In this document: positions 2,185 through 19,356 of the stretch, one piece after another
Numbering within the stretch: position 1 is the first letter of the stretch
How the letters are laid out: each line of letters opens with the position of its first letter
NCBI GenBank assembly: GCA_965644315.1
Contig: CBFFRQ010000081.1
Coordinates: 372,001-436,000 of the forward strand
Source of the DNA: Caecitellus pseudoparvulus
Lineage: Eukaryota > Protista > Bigyra: Bicosoecida
Direction: 5' to 3'
DNA length: 64,000 nucleotides
Made by a program: the position numbers and the translations under genes
Notes under the pieces: model-generated
The model's input: only the letters and a program-made list of their open reading frames with translations
What the model was told of the DNA's origin: nothing
The model's database searches: none

Positions 2185-5100
2185 ATGTCGGCCGGCAGCA
2201 TCCGCAGCCGCGTGGTGCAGGAGATACTGTCCAGTGAGCAGGTGGGTGATGTTTGCATCGCTTGCGACGAGCAGGCGTGTGCATCTCCCGCACCGCCAGC
2301 GCTATCCTGTGCTGCCTGCCACGCGTTTCTCGAGCCATTAGCATGGCATTTATCTGCTTTCCTTCCCAGTCCTACGTCGAGGACATGGAACGGCTGTGCC
2401 TGTTTTTCCTTGCGCCGCTGCGACGCTTGGCCAGCTCCTCCAACCCAGTGCTGACTGCACCCCAAGTCAGCACGATCTTCGGCACAGTGGACCAACTGGT
2501 GAGTGCTTCACCACATCAGGGGTGGTTCCATTCCCCAACTGCCGCGTTCCAGACCAGAGCACTCTCAGTGCCGCGTGCTTGCCCTTGCATTGCCGGCTGG
2601 CGTGGCACTGGCGTTGCAGCCTCGCTCCCGCCTGCCTGATGCTCACAGCCCCTGCCGCTCGCATCGCACAGCTGGAGTTCAACCGTAGCTTCTTGGCAGA
2701 TCTGTCAGCAGAGGTGAACAATACCGAAGGGCGTGACCCCCAGCTGGGCCAGCTCTTCGTTGACTTCGGACCGTACCTGAAGATGTACTCAGGTGCGGCT
2801 GTGCCGGTTTGCATCCTCGCCCTGCTGCCGGAGTCCAACCAGCGCACGCTACGCTTCCGCAGCTTTCGTGGACAAACATGACGTAGCGTTGCGGGCGCTG
2901 GAGGAGGCAGAGGTGAACTCTGCATCTTTCCGCTCCTTCATCACCAACATCTACGCACTGAACACGGTGCGGGGCCAGACCCTGCGCTCCTTCCTCATCA
3001 TGCCTGGTGCGTCGCCAGCTCCCTGCCAAGCCATGCACAGTTATACAACGCTCTTTTTCTCGCCTTGCGCAGTGCAACGGGTCCCACGGTACCGCCTGCT
3101 TCTGAAGGAGTTGCTGTCCCATACCCCCGAGGAACATGCCGACCGGCGTGCGTTGGAGAAGGCACTGGGAATTGTGGAGCAGGCCGCCACGCACATCAAT
3201 GAGGGCATTCGGCGGCGCGAGAACATGGAAAAGATCCTCGAAGTTCAGCAGGATGAGGGTGTGTCTCTCGTCCAGCCCAGTCGTGTGTTTATGAAGGAGG
3301 GCACTCTGTTCAAGCTGTGTCGGCGCGGGTTCAAAGAGTTCACGTTCTACCTGTTCAACGACAGTGAGTGAGCCAGCTCCATGCAGCCCATGCCATGTGT
3401 CACACTGGCCACACCACCCCCCCTTGCGCAGTCTTGCTGTATTGTGGCGCCGGGCAATTCGGCCGCTCCAGCCGGGTGTTGCAGCTGGCTGGAGTGTACG
3501 TTGCGGACGTGGGCGCGACTGCCGTGCGCAAGTCGCCACGAGGGTCCTTCTGGATTGGTGCCGGAGGTGGCGGCACCCCTGCAGCTCCCGCACCTGCTAT
3601 GGCAGAGTACAAGTACTTGCCACAGGCCCAAGCAGGCGGAGCAAAGCTCGCACCTCCAGGAACTGAAGATACTCCTGATGCCCGGGCAGGTGTGGACTCT
3701 GCAGGAGCCGCGGCAACCAAGGACGTGGATGCAACCCGGTCTTTCCTGCTGCAGTCTTCCACCAAGAGCTTCATTGTGCAGGCAGCTGACGCAGGGAAGG
3801 CTGCAGAGTGGCGCTCTGCAATTTCCGGCGCAGCAGCGGCTTGCCGCCGCTCAGCTGGCGGCAGTGCAGGCGAGCAAGACGCAGCACCGGTGTGGGAAGT
3901 GGACTCCGAAGTGCCTGCGTGCCGCCTATGTGCAGTACAATTTGGCATGCTGGTGCGCAAGTGAGTTGTCACAGCGGGCCCTGGTCACACCGCTCCGAAC
4001 ACCCACCTGCACCTTTGCACACGCCTCCGCCTTCTTCTCTGCACAGACACCACTGCCGCAACTGTGGCAGCATTGTTTGCAATGCCTGCAGTCCTTACCG
4101 CTGGCCGCTGCCCCGTATTGACCCTGATCGCCCCAGCCGTGTCTGCACATCATGCTACCAAAGCCTGGTCGCGCCCGGCAGCTCAGAAGCTGCCAGCGCA
4201 GCGACGGCTGCCGCTGCAGCTGCCGCCCGCGGCGAGGCGAACTCTGGCAGCAGCGATGACTCCATCGTGCGCAGCGTCGCTCGCAGCATCCGAAAGAGCA
4301 TCACAGGGCTCGCCGCCCGTGTGCGCAACTCTTCCATAGGCGAGGCGTCAGATTTGGAAGAGGAGTACACTCCCAGCCGCCGGCGCTCCGTTCCCAACCG
4401 CAAGCCCTCCGTGACGCCCAGCACCAGCCTCGCAGACGTGGATGCGGTCGTGGACGCGGAACTCGCAGCCAAGCGGGCTGTGGCAGCCGTGCAGGCTGCC
4501 CAGGCGAGTGGGCAGCCGGTGCTGCCAGCCACACCTGCCCGGCCCTCAGCTGCATCAGGGCCCCGTCCACGGCGTGACTCTTACCACCGCACGGAGCGTG
4601 TGCCCTTCGAGCCAGTGGCGCGGGACAGTGTGACGGTGCCCGCTGCTGCAGGTAGCACTCCCCGTTCCTCCCCGCCTGTCCCACCCCCCCGCCCTGTTTC
4701 CACGGGGGAAGTGCCCGGCGCCAAACACCCCAACACCTTCCCAGACAAGCGCCCGCCTGTGCGGGCCAGCGATGGAGCCGTGCTTCCGGCGTCCTTCTTG
4801 CATGGCTGTGTGGTTTGCGGCGATTTCGACGTTGCCGGGTTGCCCGACAACTGGTTCGCGTCTGGGGACCCAGATTCAGGACGGGTGTATTACTTCAATG
4901 ATGTCAGCGAGGAGACGGCCTGGGAGCCACCGCCCGGCTCAGACCCCACCCTAGTGGCCACCACGGCTGTGAAGCTGCCATCTCCCTGGGAGGCGGTGCG
5001 AACGGATGAGGGCCACCTGTACTTCGTCCGGCCCCGAACACCCCCGCCAGGACACACTGGCGACGTATGGCAGTCTCAGTGGGGCCTGCCAGTGGGCTCT

Positions 5101-6108
5101 GTGAAGCTGAGACCGTACGAGTCCGGTGCCGCAGGCAGTGGCCCCCCGGCACTGCAGGGCGGCGCCGCAATGGCGCCCCTTGCCCCAGGGGAGGTGGAGC
5201 CGTTGTCCCGAGAGGGGGCGGTGGGTGTGCGCATCCTGCGCGACATTTCGTCACCCACCTCGGGCGTGGCCAGTGCTGACGGCAGCAGTCCCCAGGCACG
5301 CCAACAAGGCGTCGGAGTCACCATGGTTGGCAGTCGGGGCGTGGACGGGGAGGGCTACGCCTCCACGGCACCTGTGGCGCCCACCGAAGAGTGGACCCCC
5401 GCCAGCACCCGCCTGCAGAGCAACACGTCCCTGGCACAGTACGCCGCACAGGGCGACGGGCGGCGCCCAGGAGACAGCTCCCCAGCATCCGGCACCACAC
5501 AGCGCCCCTTCGCAGGCATGCTGACAGGGCGGGCACTGCCACCTGTGCCAGTGGACGCGTCGGGCGCCCCCCCTGTGCCCCCCCGACACACAGCCCCCAC
5601 ACCAGCACCAGCGACCACTGATGGCGCCGACACACCCCCGCCAGTGCCGGCACGGCGTCGAGGTGGCGGCGCCCCCCCAACACAGCAGCAAGGCTTGACC
5701 GCAAGCCAAGTGAAGGAGATCCGTGCGCTGAAGGAGCTGGAGGACTCACACACCACGCCAGACGGCGCCGTGAACGTCCGGGCTCTGGTGGGCAAGTGGG
5801 CGGGTGGCGGCGGCGGTGCCTCACGGGCTGTGAGGGTGAAACGCACCAGTGGAGTGGGCATGCTCCCCAGCATGGTGTCTGACGCCAAGGCCACCCAAGG
5901 CCCCATCTCCAGCTCCAAGCGCCCCTCCTGGATGGCCATGCGCAAGGGCGGAGGTGCCAGCCTGGCAGGCAGCAGTGACGCCACGACAAGTGCCAGGGCC
6001 GGCGGGGGCGTCACTCCCACACGCCCGCCTCGGCGCAGCAAGGTGGGCGCTGCGCAGGGCGCCAAGGTGAGTGCGCTGCTGGCGAAGTTCGAGGGCGCGA
6101 AGCGGTAA
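2185..6108 (+). CDS. FGD/frabin-like RhoGEF (DH-PH-FYVE plus two WW domains and a Pro-rich tail)
   Basis: Exons with phase-consistent GT-AG introns: 2185-2241, 2370-2498, 2672-2792, 2863-3006, 3073-3363, 3432-3960, 4047-6108. DH motifs EILSSEQSYV and FLIMPVQRVPRYRLLLKELL; PH motifs KEGTLFK..FYLFNDILLY and AEWRSAI; FYVE WEVDSE..CRLC..RKHHCRNCG..VCNACS..RVCTSC; WW motifs LPDNW..GRVYYFN..TAWEPP and LPSPW. Confidence 0.9.
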
Positions 6109-6472
6109 GCAGCCTGGAGCTTGCACCGTGGGGCGCGTGGGGACAATGCAGTGATTGGGCGGGTGTCAGGTCGTGCATGGGGCTGGGCGGTGGAGGTGGT
6201 GGCGAGGGGGGGCGCCACGGCGTGGGTGGCACTGTACGCGTCATGGGTCATGTGCCTGAGCTGTGGGCAAGGAGGAGTGAGGTCCAGGCTGTCACGCAGC
6301 TTCGCAGGTGCGACATTGAGGCGGCTGTGTCAAAATGAACGCCCTCCTTCACCTCGTTGCACTAAATAGTGGAAGCCAGCTTGTTGTGTGCTTCTGTGCT
6401 GTGCCACTTTTGCTGTTGTGCAGTTGAGTTGGTTGGCGAAAGCAGTTGCGCCATTTGCAACACCACCACGCC

Positions 6473-8434
6473 ATGGCTGCTGAGGTCGACAAGCAGACAG
6501 GAGCGCGGCGATGGCAGGCCGCCTGTGATGCTGAGCAGCCAGATGTACTGCTGAGCATGCTGGAGGGGCGTGGCGATGGTGTGGGTGCGGAGGCGGGGAG
6601 GTTGTCGAGTGCTGAGGCAACCGCTGGCTTTGTTGTTGCTTGCAAAGCAGGGCATGTTGGCTTATTGCGTGGATTGCTCGGGTTGGAGGGTGATCAAGCT
6701 GTGGATGTGCACGCTGGAGATGAAAGTGGTCCTGAGGCTGGCTTCCGACATGCCTGTCGCAACGGGCGCATTGATGTGGTGCGAGAGCTGCTGACTCTGA
6801 CGGGTGCTCGTGAGGTGGATGTGCATGCTGGACCTGAGGGTGAGCCTGAGTACGGCTTCCAGGCTGCCTGTTGCTATGGTCATGTAGATGTTGTGAGGGA
6901 GCTGCTGACTTTGACCGGGCATCGTGAGGTGGATGTGCATGCTGGGCCTGATGGCAAACTTGAGGATGGGTTCCAATGGGCTTGTCAGAATGGGCACATT
7001 GATGTGGTGCGAGAGCTGCTGGCATTGACTGGTGCTCGAGAGGTGGATGTGCATGCTGGACCTGAGGGTGAGCCTGAGGCTGGCTTCAGACTTGCTTGTC
7101 AGAGCGGACACCTTGATGTTGTGCGAGAGCTGCTGGCGCTGGGCGGGCATCGCGAGGTGGATGTGCACGCTGGGCCTGAGGGCAAGCCTGAGACTGGCTT
7201 CAGACTTGCTTGTCAGAACGGGCACCTTGATGTGGTGCGAGAGCTGCTGGCGCTGAGCGGGCATCGTGAGGTGGATGTGCATGCTGGAGATCCGAACAGT
7301 CCTGAGGCTGCCTTCCAGCTTGCTTGTCAGAACGGGCACATTGACGTGGTGCGCGAGCTGCTGGCACTGACGGGGCATCGTGAGATAGATGTGCATGCTG
7401 GGCCTGAGGGCGAGCGTGAGTATGGCTTCCGACTTGCCTGTGAGCATGGGCACATTGATGTGGTCCGTGAGCTGCTGGCGCTGACTGGTGCTCGAGAGGT
7501 GGATGTACATGCTGGGCCTGAGGGCAAGCCTGAGGCCGGCTTCAGACTTGCTTGTCAGAACGGGCACATTGATGTGGTGCGAGAGCTGCTGGCGCTGAGC
7601 GGGCATCGTGAGGTGGATGTACATGCTGGGCCTGAGGGCAAGCCTGAGGCTGGCTTCAGACTTGCTTGTCGCTTTGGGCACCTTGATGTTGTGCGAGAGC
7701 TGCTGGCGCTGACTGGTGCTCGGGAGGTGGATGTACATGCTGGGCCTGAGGGCAAGCCTGAGGCTGGCTTCAGACTTGCTTGTCAGAACGGGCACCTTGA
7801 TGTAGTGCGAGAGCTGCTGGCGCTGAGCGGGCATCGTGAGGTGGATGTACATGCTGGGCCTAAGGGCTGGCCTGAGGCTTGCTTCCGACTTGCCTGCGAG
7901 TATGGCCACATTGATGTGGTGCGAGAGCTGCTGGCGCTGGACGGGCAACGTGAGGTGGATGTGCATGCTGAAGATCCGAACGGTCCTGAGGCTGCCTTTC
8001 AACTTGCCTGTCAGAATGGGCACATTGATGTAGTTCGAGAGCTGCTGAAGCTGACTGGTGCACGTGAGGTTGATGTTCATGCTGGGCCTGAGGGCTGGCC
8101 TGAGGCTGCCTTCCTGGCCGCTTGTTGGAAGGGGCATTTGGATGTGCTGCGGGAGCTTTTGGCATTGAGCGGGCATCGTGAGGTGGATGTGCATGCTGGG
8201 CCTGAGGGCACACCTGAGTTTGGCTTCGTGGCCGCTTGTTGGACGGGGCATTTGGATGTGCTGCGGGAGCTGCTAGGCCTCACTGGCCATCGGGCCATCC
8301 CCCTGCACACACGACTCGCAGCGGGAACAGCAGCTGTGCAACCTGCCAAAGATGCCGCCTGGCACGGCACCAGCACTCGACGTGGGCGGCGTACCATGGT
8401 GCTGCTGCGTGCTGGCCGGACAGCAAGGAAGTGA
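6473..8434 (+). CDS. Ankyrin-like repeat protein ANK-1 (653 aa, 15 units of 38 aa), intronless
   Basis: ATG in the ccacgccATGg context shared by all four copies. Unit consensus AGFRLACQNGHIDVVRELLALTGHREVDVHAGPEGKPE matches the ankyrin A-x-x-G-H..VV..LL pattern with an insertion. Confidence 0.9.
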   Translation: MAAEVDKQTGARRWQAACDAEQPDVLLSMLEGRGDGVGAEAGRLSSAEATAGFVVACKAGHVGLLRGLLGLEGDQAVDVHAGDESGPEAGFRHACRNGRIDVVRELLTLTGAREVDVHAGPEGEPEYGFQAACCYGHVDVVRELLTLTGHREVDVHAGPDGKLEDGFQWACQNGHIDVVRELLALTGAREVDVHAGPEGEPEAGFRLACQSGHLDVVRELLALGGHREVDVHAGPEGKPETGFRLACQNGHLDVVRELLALSGHREVDVHAGDPNSPEAAFQLACQNGHIDVVRELLALTGHREIDVHAGPEGEREYGFRLACEHGHIDVVRELLALTGAREVDVHAGPEGKPEAGFRLACQNGHIDVVRELLALSGHREVDVHAGPEGKPEAGFRLACRFGHLDVVRELLALTGAREVDVHAGPEGKPEAGFRLACQNGHLDVVRELLALSGHREVDVHAGPKGWPEACFRLACEYGHIDVVRELLALDGQREVDVHAEDPNGPEAAFQLACQNGHIDVVRELLKLTGAREVDVHAGPEGWPEAAFLAACWKGHLDVLRELLALSGHREVDVHAGPEGTPEFGFVAACWTGHLDVLRELLGLTGHRAIPLHTRLAAGTAAVQPAKDAAWHGTSTRRGRRTMVLLRAGRTARK

Positions 8435-8612
8435 CAGCAACTGTAGGCCGACTCAGTCCTGGCGTCTCCAGCTGGGAAGGCTCCACGCTGTGAGTGAGTG
8501 AGGCGACACAGGTGAGGGCTCCACGTGACACTGCTCCCATCGCATCGACCAGACACGGTGCAGGCGCGCGCACTGTGCTGCGGGCTTGGACTGGGTCGTG
8601 CTCTTGGACGAC

Positions 8613-8698
8613 ACCCCCCACGACAGCCTCGATGGTGGGTGACCCTGCTTCCAACGCGTCGACTGCGTGCGGCAGCCGCGGTATCATCAGCTCAGTCT
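8613..8698 (-). pseudogene. Diverged remnant of the start of the CSN6 last exon
   Basis: The minus strand reads IPRLPHAVDALEAGSPTIEAVVG versus CSN6 IPVPYKVDALEAESLTIEAVVG. Confidence 0.75.
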
Positions 8699-8699
8699 G

Positions 8700-9269
8700 A
8701 TGGGCAGTGTGGGGGATGCGTCTGGCGCCCCCCCTGTGCCCCCCCGACACACAGCCCCCACACCAGCACCAGCGACCACTGACGGCGCCGACACACCCCC
8801 GCCAGTGCCGGCACGGCGTCGAGGTGGCGGCGCCCCCCCAACACAGCAGCAAGGCTTGACCGCCAGCCAAGTGAAGGAGATCCGTGCGCTGAAGGAGCTG
8901 GAGGACTCACACACCACGCCAGACGGCGCCGTGAACGTCCGGGCTCTGGTGGGCAAGTGGGCGGGTGGCGACGGCGGTGCCTCACGGGCTGTGAGGGTGA
9001 AACGCACCAGTGGAGTGGGCATGCTCCCCAGCATGGTGTCCGACGCCAAGGCCACCCAAGGCCCCATCTCCAGCTCCAAGCGCCCCTCCTGGATGGCCAT
9101 GCGCAAGGGCGGAGGTGCCAGCCTGGCAGGCAGCAGTGACGCCTCGACAGGTGCCAGGGCCGGTGGGGGCGTCACTCCCACACGCCCGCCCCGGCGCAGC
9201 AAGGTGGGCGCTGCGCAGGGCGCCAAGGTGAGCGCGCTGCTGGCGAAGTTCGAGGGCGCGAAGCGGTAA
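8700..9269 (+). pseudogene. Duplicated 3' fragment of the RhoGEF last exon (open frame with a junction-derived ATG; pseudogene or mini-gene)
   Basis: Near-identical to about 5551-6108. Similarity continues into the 3' flank to about 9396. In-frame ATG at 8700. Confidence 0.8.
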
Positions 9270-9614
9270 GCAGCCTGGAGCTTGCACCGTGGGGCGCGTG
9301 GGGACAATGCAGTGATTGGGCGGGTGGCTGGTCGTGCATGGGGCTGGACGGTGGAGTTTGTGGCGAGGGGGGGGCGCCACGGCGTGGGTGGCACTGCACG
9401 TGTCAGCTGCGTTTCGGGACTTGTGACCCAGGTAGCAATGCAGCCTTGACAGGTGTCACACTGTCATGTCCCGGTCAAAGTCAATACCGATGCCTGCATC
9501 GTACACCTCTTGTGTACATTGACCAGCACATGCCCTTGCTGTACCGCCTGTGCCTCTGTGCCGGGGGTGTTGCTTTGTGAACGTGGCAGGTGCGGAATCA
9601 GGGTCCACCACGCC

Positions 9615-11069
9615 ATGGCTGCTGAGGTCGACAAGCAGGCAGTAGCGCGGCGATGGCAGGCCGCCTGTGATGCTGAGCAGCCAGGTGTACTGCTGAGCAT
9701 GCTGGATGGGCGTGGCGGTGGTGTGGGTGCGGAGGCGGGTGGGTTGTCGAGTACTGACACCACTGCTGGCTTTGTTGTTGCTTGCAAAACAGGGCATGTT
9801 GGCTTGCTGCGTCGATTGCTCGCATTGGAGGGTGATCAAGCCGTGGATGTGCATGCTGAGGATCGGCATGGGCCTGAGGCTGGCTTCCGATACGCCTGCT
9901 GCTGTGGCCATCTTGACGTGGTGCGAGAGCTACTGGCGCTGAGCGGGCATCGCGAGGTGGATGTACATGGAAGGGTAAACGGCATTCCTGAGGGCGGTTT
10001 CTTTCTTGCCTGCCAAAATGGCCATCTTGGTGCGGTGCGAGAGCTGCTGGCCTTGACTGGTGCTCGTGAGGTGGATGTGCATGCTGGGCGTGTTGGTGAG
10101 CCTGAGATTAGCTTTCGGCTTGCCTGTCGCAACGGGCATGTTGGCGTGGTGCTTGAACTGCTGGCATTGAGCGGGCATCGCGAGGTAGACGTGCATGCTG
10201 GGCGTGAGGGCGAACCCGAGAATGGCTTCCACCTTGCCTGTGAAAGGGGGCATACTGATGTGGTTGTTGAGCTGCTGAAGCTGACTGGTGCTCGTGAGGT
10301 GGATGTACATGCTGGGCCTGACGGTGATCCTGAGGCAGGTTTCCAGCTTGCCTGCCAGAACGGTCATGTCGAGGTTGTACGTGAACTGCTGGCGCTGACT
10401 GGGCACCGTGAGGTGGATGTACATGCTGGACCTGAGGGTAAGCCTGAGTACGGCTTCCGACTTGCCTGTCAGAATGGTCAGGCGGGTGTGGTGCGGGAGC
10501 TGCTGGCATTGAGCGGGCATCGTGAAGTGGACGTGCATGCTGGGTCTGATGGTGTGTCGGAGGCTGGCTTTCAGCTTGCGTGCCGCAATGGGCACTCTGA
10601 TGTCGTGCGAGAGCTGCTGGCGCTGACCGGTGCTCGAGAGGTGGATGTGCATGTGTCGGTTGTGGGCATTCCCGAAGCTGGATTCCGATCAGCCTGTCGC
10701 TTTGGGCATGTCGAAGTGGTGCGAGAGCTGCTGGCGCTGACTGGGCATCGCGAGGTGGACGTGCATGCTGGGCCTGAGAGCAATCCTGATGCCGGCTTCC
10801 GGGTGGCCTGTCGCTTTGGGCATGTCGAAGTGGTGCGAGAGTTGCTGGGCCTCACCGGTCATCGGGCCATCCCCCTGCACACACGACTTGCAGCGGGAAC
10901 AGCAGCTGTGCAACCTGCCAAAGATGCCGCCTGGCACGGCACCAGCACTCGATGTAGTCGTGCGGCCATGGTGCTACTGCTGGCTGACCAGGAGGGAAGG
11001 AAGCGACCGCGACCACAGGCCGGCTCACTCCTGGCGTCTCCAGCTGGGAAGGCTCCACGCTGCGAGTGA
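9615..11069 (+). CDS. Ankyrin-like repeat protein ANK-2 (484 aa, 10 units), intronless
   Basis: Same N-terminal leader and C-terminal cap as ANK-1, with the most divergent repeats. The stop seen in the paralogues (aggaagTGA) is CGA here, which extends the tail. Confidence 0.9.
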   Translation: MAAEVDKQAVARRWQAACDAEQPGVLLSMLDGRGGGVGAEAGGLSSTDTTAGFVVACKTGHVGLLRRLLALEGDQAVDVHAEDRHGPEAGFRYACCCGHLDVVRELLALSGHREVDVHGRVNGIPEGGFFLACQNGHLGAVRELLALTGAREVDVHAGRVGEPEISFRLACRNGHVGVVLELLALSGHREVDVHAGREGEPENGFHLACERGHTDVVVELLKLTGAREVDVHAGPDGDPEAGFQLACQNGHVEVVRELLALTGHREVDVHAGPEGKPEYGFRLACQNGQAGVVRELLALSGHREVDVHAGSDGVSEAGFQLACRNGHSDVVRELLALTGAREVDVHVSVVGIPEAGFRSACRFGHVEVVRELLALTGHREVDVHAGPESNPDAGFRVACRFGHVEVVRELLGLTGHRAIPLHTRLAAGTAAVQPAKDAAWHGTSTRCSRAAMVLLLADQEGRKRPRPQAGSLLASPAGKAPRCE

Positions 11070-11536
11070 GTGAGGCGACACAGGTGAGGGCTCCACGTGA
11101 CTTTCGTCCCGTCGCAATGAAATCCCACAGTGTGTGCATGAGCGCTGTGCTGATGGGGGTTGAGTGGCCGCGTGAGCCTTGCGACCATGGGGGCTTGGGC
11201 TGGGCCGTGCGCTTGGTCGGCGGGCAGCGTGGCTGCTGCGCTGAACATGCGCCAAAGCTGCGGCGATGCAGCAACTGACACAACGAGGGCTTCACAGCAA
11301 TACCACACAACGCCACACTGAGCCGATGCCGGGGCGGGTGCCTGTGTCGTGGTCGGTGGGCGGCGTAGGTCCTGGGCGGCAACGAGAGTCAAGGCCGGAC
11401 TGGATCGGCCCCCAACTGCGGTGTGCTGCACACCAAGTGCCCCACTGCAGGCGCCTCCGCATGCGACCTGCACAAACAATGCAGTGACTGGGCGCTTGCC
11501 GCCGAGGGCAGGACACGATCAGTGCATTGCCAGACG

Positions 11537-11995
11537 TCAGTGAAACGCCGACGGCCCACCCGACGCCAACCTCGCCGCACTGCTCGACTGCAACGCCAGC
11601 CCTAGCTTGTCAAATGCTGTGTTAGCCGTGTCCACAGCCCTCGTCATGGCTGATAGCATGGCGATGACCTGGCTGTCTGTCACCTCCTCTGTGAACGCTG
11701 TGTGGAAGGCGGCGCTGTCTGCCGCCGGCAGCTGGTTCCCCACCGCCCTGCACAGGCGCAGCAACTCCCGGTCGCCCTCCACGCGCCCCTCCTTCACCGC
11801 CCGCACATACTCCCGCACGATGTGCATGCGCTCACGTGCGATGCGTACCGCCTTCAGGGAGCCTTCCAGGTGGGGGTTCACGTCGGAGTCAGTCTCCCCG
11901 CGGCGCTGCCCTGCCCCCACGACGGCCTCGATAGTGAGTGACTCTGCCTCTAGTGCATCGATTATGTGCAGCAGCAGCCGCAAGCACGACTCGGC
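11537..11995 (-). pseudogene. Duplicated last exon of CSN6 with its 3' flank (11383-11536)
   Basis: Near-identical to 16953-17370. Only the first dozen or so codons are diverged (AESCLRLLLHII vs AESWIPVPYKV). The CAG acceptor is retained at 11996-11998, and the upstream exons are absent. Confidence 0.85.
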
Positions 11996-12000
11996 CTGGC

Positions 12001-12781
12001 GGGCAGTCGGGGCGTGGACGGGGAGGGCTACGCCTCCACGGCACCTGTGGCGCCCACCGAAGAGTGGACCCCCGCCAGCACCCGCCTGCAGAGCAACACG
12101 TCCCTGGCACAGTACGCCGCACAGGGCGACGGGCGGCGCCCAGGAGACAGCTCCCCAGCATCCGGCACCACACAGCGCCCCTTCGCAGGCATGCTGACAG
12201 GGCGGGCACTGCCACCTGTGCCAGTGGACGCGTCGGGCGCCCCCCCTGTGCCCCCCCGACACACAGCCCCCACACCAGCACCAGCGACCACTGATGGCGC
12301 CGACACACCCCCGCCAGTGCCGGCACGGCGTCGAGGTGGCGGCGCCCCCCCAACACAGCAGCAAGGCTTGACCGCCAGCCAAGTGAAGGAGATCCGTGCG
12401 CTGAAGGAGCTGGAGGACTCACACACCACGCCAGACGGTGCCGTGAACGTCCGGGCTCTGGTGGGCAAGTGGGCGGGTGGCGGCGGCGGTGCCTCACGGG
12501 CTGTGAGGGTGAAACGCACCAGTGGAGTGGGCATGCTCCCCAGCATGGTGTCTGACGCCAAGGCCGCCCAAGGCCCCATCTCCAGCTCCAAGCGCCCCTC
12601 CTGGATGGCCATGCGCAAGGGCGGGGGTGCCAGCCTGGCAGGCAGCAGTGACGCCTCGACAGGTGCCAGGGCCGGCGGGGGCGTCACTCCTACACGCCCG
12701 CCTCGGCGCAGCAAGGTGGGCACTGCGCAGGGCGCCAAGGTGAGCGCGCTGCTGGCGAAGTTCGAGGGCGCGAAGCGGTAA
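12001..12781 (+). pseudogene. Duplicated 3' fragment of the RhoGEF last exon (longest copy, frame open)
   Basis: Near-identical to 5329-6108. The 3' flank matches to about 12950. First in-frame ATG at 12191. Confidence 0.85.
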
Positions 12782-13134
12782 GCAGCCTGGAGCTTGCACC
12801 GTGGGGCGCGTGGGGACAATGCAGTGATTGGGCGGGTGTCAGGTCGTGCATGGGGCTGGGCGGTGGCGAGGGGGGGCGCCACGGCGTGGGTGGCACTGTA
12901 CGCGTCATGGGTCATGTGCCTGAGCTGTGGGCAAGGAGGAGTGAGGTCCAGCCTGTGCTGCTGCTTTGGCAGGTGCGACATACTCATGGCTGAGACAATA
13001 TCAACGCTCCCTTCACCTTGTTACACTTAATATAGGAACTTAGCTTCTTGTGCGATTCTGTGCTGTGCCACTTGTGCTGTTGTGCAGGTGGGTTGGTTGG
13101 CGAGAGTGGATGCGGAATCTGGCTCCACCACGCC

Positions 13135-13956
13135 ATGGCTGCTGAGGTCGACAAGCAGGCAGTTGTGGGGCAATGGCGGGCAGCCTGTGCTGCTAGGAAG
13201 CCAGATGTACTGCTGAGCATGCTGGAGGGGCGTGGCGGTGGTGTGGGTGCGGAGGTGGGAGAGTTGTCGAGTGCTGATACCACTGCTGGCTTTGTGGTTG
13301 CTTGCAAAACAGGGCATGTTGGCTTGCTGAGTCGATTGCTCGCATTGGAGGGTGATCAAGCCGTGGATGTGCACGCCGAGGATCGGTATGATCCTGAGGT
13401 TGGCTTTCGACATGCCTGTCGCAACGGGCACATTGATGTGGTGCGAGAGCTGCTGGCGCTGACTGGTGCTCGAGAGGTGGATGTACATGCTGGGCCTGAG
13501 GGCAGTCCTGAGTATGCCTTCGTAGTTGCTTGTCAGAAAGGACACATTGATGTGGTACGCGAGCTGCTGTCTTTGACTGGTGCTCGTGAGGTGGATGTAC
13601 ATGCTGGGCCTAAGGGCTGGCCTGAGGCTGCCTTCCTGGCCGCTTGTTGGAAGGGGCATTTGGATGTGCTGCGGGAGCTTTTGGCATTGAGCGGGCATCG
13701 TGAGGTGGATGTGCATGCTGGGCCTGAGGGCACACCTGAGTTTGGCTTCGTGGCCGCTTGTTGGACGGGGCATTTGGATGTGCTGCGGGAGCTGCTAGGC
13801 CTCACTGGCCATCGGGCCATCCCCCTGCACACACGCCTTGCAGCGGGAACAGCAGCTGTGCAACCTGCCAAAGATGCCGCCTGGCACGGCACCAGCACTC
13901 GACATGGGCGGCGTACCATGGTGCTGCTGCGTGCTGGCCGGACAGCAAGGAAGTGA
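13135..13956 (+). CDS. Ankyrin-like repeat protein ANK-3 (273 aa, 5 units), intronless
   Basis: The N-terminal part is nearly identical to ANK-4. The last two units, tail and downstream flank are nearly identical to ANK-1. Confidence 0.9.
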   Translation: MAAEVDKQAVVGQWRAACAARKPDVLLSMLEGRGGGVGAEVGELSSADTTAGFVVACKTGHVGLLSRLLALEGDQAVDVHAEDRYDPEVGFRHACRNGHIDVVRELLALTGAREVDVHAGPEGSPEYAFVVACQKGHIDVVRELLSLTGAREVDVHAGPKGWPEAAFLAACWKGHLDVLRELLALSGHREVDVHAGPEGTPEFGFVAACWTGHLDVLRELLGLTGHRAIPLHTRLAAGTAAVQPAKDAAWHGTSTRHGRRTMVLLRAGRTARK

Positions 13957-14134
13957 CAGCAACTGTAGGCCGACTCAGTCCTGGCGTCTCCAGCTAGGAA
14001 GGCTCCACGCTGTGAGTGAGTGAGGCGACTCAGGTGAGGGCTCCACGTGACACTGCTCCCATCGCATCGACCAGACACGGTGCAGTCGCGCGCACTGTGC
14101 TGCGGGCTTGGACTGGGTCGTGCTCTTGGACGAC

Positions 14135-14220
14135 ACCCCCCACGACAGCCTCGATGGTGGGTGACCCTGCCTCCAACGCGTCGACTGCGTGCGGCAGCCG
14201 CGGTATCATCAGCTCAGTCT
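14135..14220 (-). pseudogene. Second copy of the diverged CSN6 exon remnant
   Basis: Almost identical to 8613-8698 (offset 5522). Confidence 0.75.
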
Positions 14221-14221
14221 G

Positions 14222-14791
14222 ATGGGCAGTGTGGGGGATGCGTCTGGCGCCCCCCCTGTGCCCCCCCGACACACAGCCCCCACACCAGCACCAGCGACCA
14301 CTGATGGCGCCGACACACCCCCGCCAGTGCCGGCACGGCGTCGAGGTGGCGGCGCCCCCCCAACACAGCAGCAAGGCTTGACCGCCAGCCAAGTGAAGGA
14401 GATCCGTGCGCTGAAGGAGCTGGAGGACTCACACACCACGCCAGACGGCGCCGTGAACGTCCGGGCTCTGGTGGGCAAGTGGGCGGGTGGCGGCGGCGGT
14501 GCCTCACGGGCTGTGAGGGTGAAACGCACCAGTGGAGTGGGCATGCTCCCCAGCATGGTGTCCGACGCCAAGGCCGCCCAAGGCCCCATCTCCAGCTCCA
14601 AGCGCCCCTCCTGGATGGCCATGCGCAAGGGCGGAGGTGCCAGCCTGGCAGGCAGCAGTGACGCCACGACAGGTGCCAGGGCCGGCGGGGGCGTCACTCC
14701 CACACGCCCGCCTCGGCGCAGCAAGGTGGGCACTGCGCAGGGCGCCAAGGTGAGCGCGCTGCTGGCGAAGTTCGAGGGCGCGAAGCGGTAA
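14222..14791 (+). pseudogene. Duplicated 3' fragment of the RhoGEF last exon (open frame, junction ATG)
   Basis: Near-identical to 8700-9269 and 5551-6108. The flank matches to about 14970. Confidence 0.8.
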
Positions 14792-15156
14792 GCAGCCTGG
14801 AGCTTGCACCGTGGGGCGTGTGGGGACAATACAGTGATTGGGCGGGTGGCTGGTCGTGCATGGGGCTGGGCGGTGGAGGTGGTGGCGAGGGGGGGCGCCA
14901 CGGCGTGGGTGGCACTGTACGCGTCATGGGTCATGTGCCTGAGCTGTGGGCAAGGAGGCGTGAGGTCCAGGCTGTGCTGCTGCTTTGGCAGGCGGGACAT
15001 ACTCGTGGCTGAGACAATATCAACACCCCCCTTCACCTCACTGCACTTGGGATTGGAACCCAGCTTGTTGTGTGCTTCTTTGCTGTGCCACTTGTGCTGT
15101 TGTGCAGGTGGGTTGGTTGGCGAAAGCAGTTGCGCCATTTGCAACACCACCACGCC

Positions 15157-16778
15157 ATGGCTGCTGACAGCGACAGGCAGGCAGTGGTGGCAGGATGGCG
15201 GGCAGCCTGTGCTGCTAGGAAGCCAGATGTACTGCTGAGCATGCTGGAGGGGCGTGGCGGTGGTGTGGGTGCGGAGGCGGGTGGGTTGTCGAGTGGTCAC
15301 ACAACTGCTGGCTTTGTGGTTGCTTGCCAAACAGGGCATGTTGGCTTGCTGAGTCGATTGCTCGCATTGGAGGGTGATCAAGCCGTGGATGTGCACGCCG
15401 AGGATCGGTATGATCCTGAGGTTGGCTTTCGACACGCCTGTCGCAACGGGCACATTGATGTGGTGCGGGAGCTGCTGGCGCTGAGTGGGCATCGCGAGGT
15501 GGATGTACATGCTGGCCCGATGGATAAGTCGGAGGATGGATTTCGAGCTGCCTGCGAAGAAGGACACGTTGATGTGGTACGGGAGCTGCTGTTGCTGAGT
15601 GGACATCGGGAGGTGGATGTGCATGCTGGACTGATGGCAAGCCTGAGGCTGGCTTCAGACACGCTTGTCATTTCGGGCACATTGACGTGGTGCGAGAGCT
15701 GCTGGCTCTGACAGGGCATCGTGAGGTAGATGTGCATGCGGGGCCTGAGGGTGGGCCTGAGGCTTGCTTCCGAGCTGCCTGTCAGAACGGGCACCAGGAT
15801 GTGGTGCGAGAGCTGCTGGCTCTGACAGGGCATCGTGAGGTGGATGTGCATGCTGGAGATCCGAACGGTCCTGAGGCTGGCTTCCAGCTTGCTTGTCAGA
15901 ATGGCCACATTGGTGTGGTGCGGGAGCTGCTGGGGCTGAGCGGGCATCGTGAGGTGGATGTGCATGCTGGAGATCCGAACGGTCCTGAGGCTGCCTTCCA
16001 GCTTGCTTGTCAGAATGGCCACATTGATGTGGTGCGAGAGCTGCTGGCTCTGACAGGGCATCGTGAGGTGGATGTGCATGCTGGAGATCCGAACAGTCCT
16101 GAGGCTGCCTTCCAGCTTGCTTGTCAGAACGGGCACATTGGTGTGGTGCGGGAGCTGCTGGCTCTGACAGGGCATCGTGAGGTGGATGTGCATGCTGGAG
16201 ATCCGAACGGTCCTGAGGCTGCCTTCCAGCTTGCTTGTCAGAATGGCCACATTGGTGTGGTGCGAGAGCTGCTGGCTCTGACAGGGCATCGTGAGGTGGA
16301 TGTGCATGCTGGAGATCCGAACGGTCCTGAGGCTGCCTTCCAGCTTGCTTGTCAGAATGGCCACATTGGTGTGGTGCGAGAGCTGCTGGCTCTGACAGGG
16401 CATCGTGAGGTGGATGTGCATGCTGGAGATCCGAACGGTCCTGAGGCTGCCTTCCAGCTTGCTTGTCAGAATGGGCACATTGATGTGGTGCGAGAGCTGC
16501 TGGCGCTGACCGGGTATCGTGAGGTAGACGTGCATGCTGCTGACAGGTGGGGTGAGCCTGATGATGTCTTCCGGCACGCCTGTCGCTTTACACAGGTGAA
16601 TGTCGTGCGTGAGCTGCTAGGCCTCACTGGCCATCGGGCCATCCCCTTGCACACACGACTTGCAGCGGGAGAGACTGCTGTGCAACCTGCCAAGGATGCC
16701 GCCTGGCACGGCACCAGCACTCGACGTGGGCGGCGTGGCATGCTGCTGCTGTGGGCTGACCAGGAGAGACGGAAGTGA
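15157..16778 (+). pseudogene. Ankyrin-like repeat gene ANK-4 (12 units) with a 1-bp frameshift
   Basis: Split into ORFs 15157-15711 and 15687-16778. At 15628-15635 the sequence is ggactgat where the repeat pattern predicts ggacctgat (GPDGKPE). This is either a pseudogene or a sequencing error. Confidence 0.8.
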
Positions 16779-16952
16779 CAGCGACCACGGTCTGGCTTCG
16801 AGAGTCAAGGCCGGACTGGATCGGCCCCCAACTGCGGTGTGCTGCACACCAAGTGCCCCACTGCAGGCGCCTCCGCATGCGACCTGCACAAACAATGCAG
16901 TGACTGGGCGCTTGCCGCCGAGGGCAGGACACGATCTGTGCATTGCCAGACG

Positions 16953-18196
16953 TCAGTGAAACGCCGACGGCCCACCCGACGCCAACCTCGCCGCACTGCT
17001 CGACTGCAACGCCAGCCCTAGCTTGTCAAATGCTGTGTTAGCCGTGTCCACAGCCCTCGTCATGGCTGATAGCATGGCGATGACCTGGCTGTCTGTCACT
17101 TCCTCTGTGAACGCCGTGTGGAAGGCGGCGCTGTCTGCCGCCGGCAACTGGTTCCCCACCGCCCTGCATAGGCGCAGCAACTCCCGGTCACCCTCCACGC
17201 GCCCCTCCTTCACCGCCCGCACATACTCCCGCACGATGTGCATGCGCTCACGTGCGATGCGTACCGCCTTCAGGGAGCCTTCCAGGTGGGGGTTCACGTC
17301 GGAGTCAGTCTCCCCGCGGCGCTGCCCTGCCCCCACGACGGCCTCGATAGTGAGTGACTCTGCCTCCAGTGCGTCAACCTTGTACGGCACCGGGATCCAC
17401 GACTCAGCCTGGTGCGCGGTTGGGGAACGGGTGTGTGGGAAGGCACGTTGGCAGGTTTCGTGTGCAGTGCCCACGCACCCCAGACACGAACTCCGACATG
17501 AACAACGCAATGGGCAGGTCCTTGGCAGTATCCACTGTGGCAGGTGCAGCGTCCAGGCACAGGAACAGGGGCGCCTCTGTCATTGCCTTGACCTGCGAGA
17601 AAGGAGGAGGAGCACAGGCGTGGGAGGGATGGCCAGGCAAGGCGAAGCTGCTGCCGGCGCACCTGGGAGTGGAAGGCGAAGTCTTCTTCCGAGGGCCTTC
17701 CGTTGGGGCAGACAGCATACCATCCAAGCACTTCGTAGGTTGGGTACACATCAGCGACTGCGACGGCGTGGGCGTCGAGGGTGCCGCGCAGCGGTTTGGC
17801 GTGGTGCGGAGCGGCGGTTCTGCCTGCTGCCATGAGGCCGGCGCGCCTCACCGATTTCCACGTGTTTCTTGGTCAGAGGCAAGTTGAACCCCGCCTTGCC
17901 TTCCTCCAGGCTCACCAGTGAGTCTGCTGTGAGGATGATGTCCACGCTGTCCTCGCTCTGCGTGCCAAACAACACGCCAGCTGCCCGGGTGTGGCCTGGA
18001 GCCTGCCCTGCCTGCAGCCGTGTGTGGTGATCTGCCACGCCCAGCAGCGCCATCTGTGGTGCAAGGAAGGCAGCGAGGTGCGTTGGATGCCTGGTTGCCG
18101 CTGGCGGGGTGCTGCACGCACAGGGTGCAAGGACACAGCCTGGGCTGTGCCTGCTGCGCCAGTGTCGTCCGGTGACACTTTGCTCTCGCTTGCCAT
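16953..18196 (-). CDS. COPS6: COP9 signalosome subunit 6 (MPN domain)
   Basis: Exons 18196-18122, 18053-17852, 17757-17663, 17592-17479, 17408-16953. Motifs VSLHPMALLGVADHHTR, GVLFGTQ, VYPTYEVLGWY, DLPIALFMSE, HLEGSLKAVR, LLRLCRAVGNQLPA. Confidence 0.85.
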
Positions 18197-18342
18197 GGTG
18201 ACTGCAGAGTCGTCGTTCGGGTGTCCAAGAGGAGAAACCCGCAACACAAGCGGTGGAAGTGTCCGGCTTCCAGCTTGAGCGTGTTCGGTGTTTCCGATTC
18301 ATTAGGAATTAGCCAGGACAGCGCGCTGGCGCACGCTGCGTT

Positions 18343-19356
18343 TCAAGGGGCAACGCTGGTGCCGCTTTCTCGCAGGTCGGTGGGGGACACCAGCTCCAGG
18401 TCCCCGCACTCCTCCTCAGAGACAACACTGCCAGTGTCTAAGATGAGGCCACCCCCCTCCTCCTCCTGGGAGCCACCCACTGTGGGCAGGTGGCCAAAGC
18501 CGTCCCCTGGCGGACTGGCCCTGCGTCGCCAGCGCAAGAACAGCACTGCTGGCAAGGACCAGCCAACAACTGCCACCGCCCACGCGGCAGCAGCGGCCCA
18601 TGCAATGCCAATTTGGGGTTGCAGTGCCCCAAACAGCGTCGCATACGCCGACACACTGCCTCCTCCCAACACCATGGGCCCAACAGCGCCAAGCGTCACG
18701 CCCTGGCCCTGTGACACCCACAGTGCGACCATGGTCGTGGCGAAGATCGCGGGAAAGGTCGACAGCAAGCCCCCCAGCGTGACAGACGCCTGTGTCGCCA
18801 GCACAGACACGGTGATGGCTGCGCCTGCGAAGAGCCCCCGGCTGGCCAGCGTGCAGGGTTTGACGGGGTTGCTGCCTGGGGGCGCGGGCGGCAACACCCA
18901 GCAAGCAGCCATACCCGCGACGGCGGTAAGGGCCATGCCACCCACGCCCAGGCTGCGCAGGGCCAGTAGGCCGCCGGCCGCTGCGACGGCAGAGGTGAGG
19001 GCCAGGGCGGCGGCGGCGAGGAGGAGCCAGGTAAGGGTGGTGAGCAGCAGGATGAGGGGGAGGTGTGTGCTGGCGGGCCACGAGGGCGGGATGCAAGCGG
19101 GGATGTACCTCCACTGCAGCAGGTACAGGCCGTCCATGGCCATGCCGATGGGCACTGTCGCCATGGCCGCCTGCACTTGCTGGGAGGAGGTGGAGGCCAG
19201 CGCGATGCCGATGGAGGCTGGGATGATGGTGCTGGGGGTAGTACCGAGCACACCGCCAATGAGGCCGCCTGTGCGCTCAATGGCCACTGTGACCAGTATG
19301 GCGACAGTGCCTGCGATGAGGCCTGACAGCAGCGCGGTGCTCCAGTTTCCGTCCAT
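18343..19356 (-). CDS. Multi-pass membrane protein with a two-fold internal repeat, unknown function
   Basis: Intronless ORF with about 8-10 hydrophobic segments. Repeated GGLIGGVLGTTPST / LGGLLSTFPAI motif and an acidic tail. Confidence 0.7.
   Translation of the reverse strand: MDGNWSTALLSGLIAGTVAILVTVAIERTGGLIGGVLGTTPSTIIPASIGIALASTSSQQVQAAMATVPIGMAMDGLYLLQWRYIPACIPPSWPASTHLPLILLLTTLTWLLLAAAALALTSAVAAAGGLLALRSLGVGGMALTAVAGMAACWVLPPAPPGSNPVKPCTLASRGLFAGAAITVSVLATQASVTLGGLLSTFPAIFATTMVALWVSQGQGVTLGAVGPMVLGGGSVSAYATLFGALQPQIGIAWAAAAAWAVAVVGWSLPAVLFLRWRRRASPPGDGFGHLPTVGGSQEEEGGGLILDTGSVVSEEECGDLELVSPTDLRESGTSVAP

Follow-up and report, generated by a model that had tools for sequence, protein, structure and literature searches.

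How could fragments of two neighbouring genes stay almost identical between copies while the genes that they enclose diverged, and do such flanks serve to exchange the enclosed genes? We met this question in a 64,000-nucleotide stretch of the marine protist Caecitellus pseudoparvulus (the window; positions 372001-436000 of contig C81 in a GC-rich assembly of 30.6 Mb and 215 contigs). Between 2.8 and 17.5 kb of the window, a RhoGEF-FYVE-WW gene, represented by its 3′ part (+), is followed by four ankyrin-like genes, ANK1 to ANK4 (+), and then by the convergent 3′ end of a CSN6-like gene (-); a copy of the RhoGEF 3′ end, called an anchor below, lies upstream of every ankyrin gene. An initial annotation of this DNA had proposed that homogenised anchors act as homology arms for the gain, loss and exchange of whole ankyrin cassettes. 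We find that the locus is probably an old tandem array of duplication modules, comparable to the human RCCX module, with flank fragments homogenised by general homologous recombination.

The flank copies are more alike than the genes between them

The RhoGEF copies were identified by self-BLAST and sliding identity, and they proved as similar to each other as the initial annotation had stated, with pairwise identities of 97.2-98.8%, or 9-19 substitutions per about 690-735 bp. Anchor 1 (5329/5553-6287, +) is the parental sequence and comprises the last 780 RhoGEF coding bases and about 180 bp downstream. Anchor 3 (12002-12960, +) is a long copy of the whole of this interval; it differs from 5329-6193 by nine substitutions and one 9-bp deletion, and the long pair is identical (100%) over about 270 bp (5329-5598 versus 12002-12271). 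The other two anchors are short. Anchor 2 (8714-9405, +) is 97.4% identical to RhoGEF 5553-6243, and anchor 4 (14236-14980, +) has variants in common with anchor 2 in its 5′ part and is like anchors 1 and 3 at its 3′ end.

At the 3′ edge of the anchors the identity dropped within a few bases. The spacers upstream of ANK1, ANK3 and ANK4 (U1, U3 and U4) were 77-84% identical, against 98.2-98.8% for the anchors, giving Fisher p values of 1e-12 to 1e-22 for the contrast between anchor and spacer, and the spacer upstream of ANK2 (U2; 9406-9614, +) could not be aligned with the others, in agreement with the earlier statement that the spacers are far more diverged than the anchors. A smaller, yet real contrast was observed at synonymous sites: synonymous divergence (dS) was 0.02-0.06 for the anchors, against 0.09-0.18 for the N-terminal caps (N-caps) and 0.05-0.29 for the C-terminal caps (C-caps) of the ankyrin genes, so anchors and cassettes do not have the equal synonymous divergence that the initial annotation had named as the pattern speaking against it. 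The ratio of nonsynonymous to synonymous divergence (dN/dS) of the anchors was 0.06-0.5.

Two features of the differences point to copying. The informative anchor sites back all three possible groupings of the copies, at 5:2:1, indicating that sequence has moved among the anchor copies. Moreover, the anchors and the long CSN6 fragment described below together have 22 coding differences, 16 of which affect the third base of a codon, an excess over one third (p=2e-4) that was also seen against a model letting the fragments drift (p=0.013). This bias suggests that the fragments track the selected parent genes. The simplest reading is that the fragments have been repeatedly overwritten from, or exchanged with, intact parents under purifying selection, where we infer the direction of copying.

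An apparent conversion-tract edge within an old CSN6 fragment

The initial annotation had placed CSN6-derived sequence after each ankyrin gene, which was only partly borne out. A long CSN6 fragment (c′, 11383-12001, -) follows ANK2 only, and the real CSN6-like gene lies after ANK4; after ANK1 and ANK3 there is no more than a degenerate CSN6 remnant of about 100 bp (c″), which is 74-78% identical to CSN6 and c′. The two copies of this remnant (8615-8713 and 14137-14235, both -) lie directly before anchors 2 and 4, respectively, and are 99% identical to each other.

Most of c′ (11383-11956, -) is a copy of the CSN6 3′ end at 16799-17372 with 7 differences in 574 bases, while the adjoining 45 bp up to the junction (11957-12001, -), homologous to CSN6 17373-17414, differ at 14 of 42 aligned bases and by additional indels (Fisher p=4e-13 for the jump). 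A young duplicate would be uniformly alike, so the step from 98.8% to 67% identity points to an old fragment that was partly overwritten, and we read the jump at 11956/11957 as a conversion-tract edge inside it. The unconverted end of c′ has derived states in common with c″; the degenerate state of c″ and the step inside c′ indicate that the fragments themselves are old. It is unusual for a conversion-tract edge to be marked in nature as clearly as by this step from 99% to 67% within one fragment, and the step implies that duplicates of this kind are older than their identity by itself would suggest.

We then located the junctions at which the truncated flank genes meet: c′ joins anchor 3 at 12001|12002, and c″ joins the short anchors at 8713|8714 and 14235|14236. 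Both junction types retain the first approximately 11 bases of the RhoGEF segment (5329-5339), suggesting that all junctions derive from one CSN6|RhoGEF fusion and that the short anchors are the long form minus an internal deletion. We also considered that the anchors might be retrocopies of 5′-truncated mRNA 3′ ends and dropped this origin, given that the one junction shared by the short anchors retains 11 bp of the long-anchor start and that no poly(A) follows the anchors.

A further copy of the arrangement lies on another contig, C94 (173135-175159), where an ankyrin gene is followed, in the same order, by fragments of CSN6 and of RhoGEF (147 bp of the latter) at 70-77% identity. The match extends into the U2-specific tail (11348-11382), which suggests that the relic was copied long ago from a U2-like module; its breakpoints (CSN6 ~17186 | RhoGEF ~5638) are unlike the present junction. 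The ankyrin open reading frame (ORF) of the relic (397 amino acids, aa) is open with one irregular unit, and the relic adjoins an unrelated 571-aa ORF. The tract edge in c′, the c″ remnant, this relic and the incompatible anchor sites argue, as the initial annotation had done, against duplications of equal age, and they support the view that gene conversion or unequal exchange has maintained the similarity of the anchors and of the CSN6 fragment.

Exchange also begins inside the ankyrin arrays

Sequence painting showed that ANK3 (13135-13956, +) is chimeric: its 5′ part is ANK4-like (93-99%), one unit is unique, and its last units and tail are 98-100% identical to ANK1 (6473-8434, +). In ANK4 (15157-16778, +), a single unit type, similar to unit 6 of ANK1, has recently expanded into the units at 15837-16520. 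The array of ANK2 (9615-11069, +) matches the other local units at no more than 70-86% identity, and the 5′ regions of the modules form a block mosaic. Recent exchange tracts begin within the ankyrin arrays as often as at the edges of the anchors, and high-identity tracts also have their starts and ends within arrays and N-caps.

The local ankyrin genes are each other's closest relatives, with 81-93% DNA identity against no more than about 81% for loci elsewhere. Whole-genome searches for ectopic donors with an anchor, the CSN6 fragment, the U2 spacer with its N-cap and the ANK1 tail likewise gave no match that surpassed the local copies. In X6, a second sample, the pieces of ANK2 showed 5 differences in about 950 bases (~99.5% conserved), which argues that the cassettes are not intrinsically fast-mutating. 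A marine-metagenome contig (X5) over the ANK3 N-cap (13124-13373) differed at 15 of 250 bases, far above the rest of the locus, and may represent a different cassette or a related population.

A candidate history of the locus

Based on these results, we propose the following course. The ancestral locus would have had a single ankyrin gene between the two parents, in the arrangement RhoGEF -> ANK <- CSN6. A tandem duplication with breakpoints in both flanking genes would have joined a truncated CSN6 3′ end to a truncated RhoGEF 3′ end, and further duplication together with an internal deletion would have led to four modules. The sequence pattern indicates that general homologous recombination, including gene conversion and probably unequal exchange, has then copied sequence repeatedly between the fragments and the intact, selected parents, and among the fragments, and so has held the fragments at 97-100% identity. 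The spacers and much of the ankyrin genes have no constrained master and may be under relaxed or diversifying selection; they have diverged by 10-30%, with patchy exchange. The homogeneous anchors would be a by-product that also favours further unequal exchange, rather than a dedicated device.

Related clusters and the ankyrin proteins

The four genes belong to a large family: at least 238 matches, often in tandem clusters, are spread over more than 30 contigs of the 30.6-Mb genome. Two of these clusters bear on the origin of the flanks. On contig C67 (827000-845000), five tandem ankyrin genes of 272-285 aa are arranged with a 2.69-kb period, and every unit carries the last 738 bp of an upstream 689-aa ORF. 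These captured copies are 94-98% identical and no better conserved than the genes themselves, which indicates that captured flanks are a plain consequence of duplication breakpoints. No Pfam match was found for the upstream or the intergenic ORFs of this cluster. Contig C205, a whole contig of 16.4 kb, holds ten family genes head to tail with gaps of 200-300 bp, leaving no room for a captured gene fragment; several of its genes start with an extra N-terminal extension (MSVSKATLGFSTYW...) that the genes in the window are without. Captured flanks of the kind for which the initial annotation had proposed a genome-wide search do occur on C67, as an upstream-gene 3′ end without extra homogenisation.

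The products of ANK1 to ANK4 are predicted to be cytosolic-looking proteins of the ankyrin fold, and a binding function would follow from that fold only. An AlphaFold2 model of ANK3 (predicted local distance difference test, pLDDT, 81.9; predicted template-modelling score, pTM, 0.79) has two helices per unit. The top Foldseek matches of this model were FEM1B/C, DARPins and AnkB, with a probability of 1.00 and a target TM score of 0.77-0.82 for the DARPins, and the PDB matches of the ankyrin proteins by phmmer were ankyrin proteins. Across 36 units, the ratio of nonsynonymous to synonymous change (pN/pS) was 0.07 at 22 scaffold positions and 0.84 at 16 variable positions, with single positions up to 4.4. 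The variable positions are those which we take, by the ankyrin consensus, to lie in the loop and the first helix, where DARPin libraries are randomised. This pattern fits binders under relaxed or diversifying selection but is usual for ankyrin repeats.

Alternative explanations

Whether the modules themselves are real was addressed by comparing 6,000 letters (8400-14399) with the contigs of four runs. Word depth in the contigs of run X1 was ~48 over unique parts, 112-121 over two-copy parts and 159-174 over the anchors, which fits the assembled copy numbers. Bridging contigs cover 8713|8714 (X1) and 14235|14236 (X5), and contigs also link anchor 2 to the ANK2 spacer and the ANK2 tail to c′. 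Relative depth at the locus was lower in X6 than in X1, and the short contigs of the four runs show that other samples have the junctions too, but cannot count modules. The DNA of the window also occurs in marine metagenomes; an exact-protein look-up with ANK3 for assemblies of the same species or relatives gave no match, and a metagenome scan with the CSN6 C-terminus gave no relative, where both the look-up and the scan may omit the source species. Judged by word depth and bridging contigs, the assembly appears sound. An artefact of collapsed, chimeric or over-polished repeats, which the 215 contigs, many small ones being purely ankyrin arrays, and a frameshift in ANK4 that is possibly a consensus error might suggest, is therefore highly improbable: depth in X1 scales with assembled copy number, error-free contigs from independent runs, marine metagenomes included, extend over the unique spacers and two junction types, and polishing is unable to raise an identity of 70-85% to 99%. 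It is equally hard to believe that the RhoGEF tails are expressed mini-genes kept alike by purifying selection. They do keep open frames (ORFs 8667-9269, 11966-12781 and 14189-14791), and their dN/dS would allow it, but selection on a protein would not hold synonymous sites and the part of the 3′ untranslated region at 95-100%, the same synonymous bias is found in c′, which is a truncated antisense fragment, long open frames are frequent by chance in such GC-rich DNA, and no Pfam domain was found in the tail encoded by the anchors.

The anchors, tails and c′, all about 99% identical, could alternatively give the true age of recent duplications, with the ankyrin genes and spacers overwritten later from paralogues, for which the large family offers many potential donors, or mutating unusually fast. 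We consider this very unlikely, as the divergent segments have their nearest matches in the assembly among the local copies, the step in c′ and the degenerate c″ show old fragments, and ANK2 does not evolve fast between samples. The proposal of the initial annotation, that the anchors are selected homology arms for the gain, loss and swap of whole cassettes in a fast-evolving repertoire of intracellular binders, for example antiviral ones, draws on more observations: homogeneous flanks on both sides of the ankyrin genes, unit numbers varying from 15 to 10, 5 and 12, the chimeric ANK3, the high pN/pS at places randomised in DARPins, and a family of this size in which tandem clusters are frequent. 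It does not sit well with the exchange tracts that begin within the arrays too, with fragments that look like passive copies of selected parents, with the flank of the C67 cluster captured without extra homogenisation and the dense C205 cluster that has no room for fragments, or with the stability of ANK2 (~99%) in the second sample; all four genes have their own leader and ATG, and there is no layout of expression site and silent cassettes. We therefore did not retain it, and regard it as unlikely. The related idea that the converted flanks turn this and similar loci into RCCX-type copy-number hotspots, by which an abundant marine picoeukaryote would quickly vary a very large repertoire of hypervariable 38-residue ankyrin binders, for instance in an arms race against viruses, and that the architecture itself is selected, seems doubtful to a similar degree.

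Several points also weigh against an old, homogenised array of duplication modules. The unique piece at the junction of c′ and anchor 3 (11951-12001, 51 bp) has depth and no listed bridging contig, and the module order is taken from the assembly. No run on record as RNA contained the stretch. The direction from parent to fragment was drawn from the codon-position bias, which a mutational bias of GC-rich third positions could inflate. Three anchor sites at which the parent differs from all three fragments show that the fragments also exchange sequence with each other or that the parent has recently changed. The relic on C94, by its differing breakpoints, could be an independent older duplication. 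Finally, no MPN domain was detected in the N-terminal part of the parental CSN6-like gene, so that this parent is only putatively intact.

Comparison with known systems

In the human RCCX module (RP-C4-CYP21-TNX, major histocompatibility complex class III), truncated TNXA and RP2 meet at the internal junctions, and the modules often undergo conversion and unequal crossover (PMC3595039, PMC8362596). The present locus resembles this module in that the duplication breakpoints lie within both flanking genes, with c′ in the place of TNXA and the RhoGEF anchor in that of RP2, in the highly identical copies, in gene conversion between modules and with the parents, and in the varying length of the cargo gene. 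It differs from RCCX in that the ankyrin cargo changes by units of 114 bp, that the modules measure about 2-3.5 kb instead of about 30 kb, and that the cargo paralogues are far more diverged than the flanks; a copy-number polymorphism like that of RCCX is hypothetical here.

It is an established concept of population genetics that duplicated genes and fragments of pseudogenes evolve in concert when gene conversion copies onto them from a master under selection. Sharp tract boundaries, mosaic sites, fragments that track a functional copy and the escape into divergence where identity is too low are all found here, and the locus differs from known cases only as a new instance in a marine protist. 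Antigenic-variation cassettes, such as the variant surface glycoprotein genes of trypanosomes with their 70-bp repeats and conserved 3′ ends, Borrelia vlsE and Neisseria pilS, similarly place variable coding cassettes between conserved flanks able to guide homologous recombination. Unlike in those systems, no one site of expression is set apart from silent cassettes lacking a promoter, the flanks are pieces that derive by accident from housekeeping neighbours, and exchange goes beyond the flanks. The locus is thus a clean new example of a known process, with no new mechanism and no special machine for generating diversity. What it records is how a very large family expands in a small genome: segments are duplicated in tandem, taking parts of adjacent genes with them, and gene conversion then acts on them in patches. 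More interesting than the locus is the entire ankyrin family, whose function most deserves further attention.

The proteins share with ankyrin proteins (Ank_2, FEM1B/C, DARPins) the profile matches, the predicted helix-turn-helix solenoid and the placement of the variable residues in the loop and first helix. Their unit of 38 residues is longer than the canonical ankyrin repeat (~33 residues); the additional residues follow helix 2 or belong to the loop, and the model places a short helical turn there.

Genes of the locus and wider distribution of the family

The repeat period is exactly 114 bp, or 38 aa, in all four ankyrin genes, and register marks numbered 15 in ANK1, 10 in ANK2, 5 in ANK3 and 3+9=12 in ANK4, the same as the unit counts given before; the final mark of each gene is the C-terminal cap and not a full repeat. 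ANK1 accordingly consists of an N-cap, 14 full 38-aa units and a C-cap, ANK2 has nine full units and caps, and the mosaic ANK3 has four full units and caps. The Ank_2 Pfam matches had E-values of 5e-73, 3e-35 and 6e-18 and bit scores of 242, 121 and 66 for ANK1, ANK2 and ANK3, respectively, against a cut-off of 27.3. These three genes are uninterrupted, intronless ORFs. ANK4, which the initial annotation had counted with them as intronless, does not have one continuous frame: a one-base deletion in 15620-15640, near 15631 (a C missing from the loop codons), causes a -1 frameshift after three units, and the last nine units are open, but in another frame only. ANK4 would be either a very recent pseudogene or the product of a consensus error. 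GC skew across the ankyrin arrays was strongly positive.

Each gene has its own ATG and a family-type upstream leader that is common to members elsewhere. In the spacer and 5′ leader of ANK1 (6288-6472, +), ~165 bp are common to family members elsewhere at 72-86% identity, and a genome search with the first ~130 bp of the ANK2 spacer (9406-9537) gave no other match.

The 3′ part of the parental RhoGEF-FYVE-WW gene occupies 2793-6108 (+), with its stop at 6106-6108. Pfam identified a RhoGEF domain in ORF 2793-3371 (PF00621, E 5.5e-19) and FYVE (PF01363) and WW (PF00397) domains in ORF 3808-6108. At the other end, the 3′ end of the CSN6-like gene lies at 16799-17510 (-), its block of homology with c′ at 16799-17425; a MitMem_reg domain was found in 16953-17510 (-), and all PDB matches of this gene were CSN6, so that both flanking genes have the identities given in the initial annotation. 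Upstream of this C-terminal domain (17510-18400, -), no MPN/JAB domain was detected by Pfam on ORFs, a six-frame genome scan or PDB phmmer, and the N-terminal half may be split by introns or be very divergent. GC content is 61-69% in the first 30 kb of the window and 70-73% over 30-48 kb.

Relatives of the family in public data were marine metagenome proteins with at most 68% identity. A paper on Pelagomonas calceolata (genome of 32.4 Mb, 63.6% GC; PMC9481584) and a preprint on a pelagophyte pangenome make no mention of ankyrin. Many small contigs of the assembly consist of ankyrin arrays alone, and the longest family member seen, an uninterrupted frame of 1852 aa (C54:236804-242362), bears 46 repeat marks.

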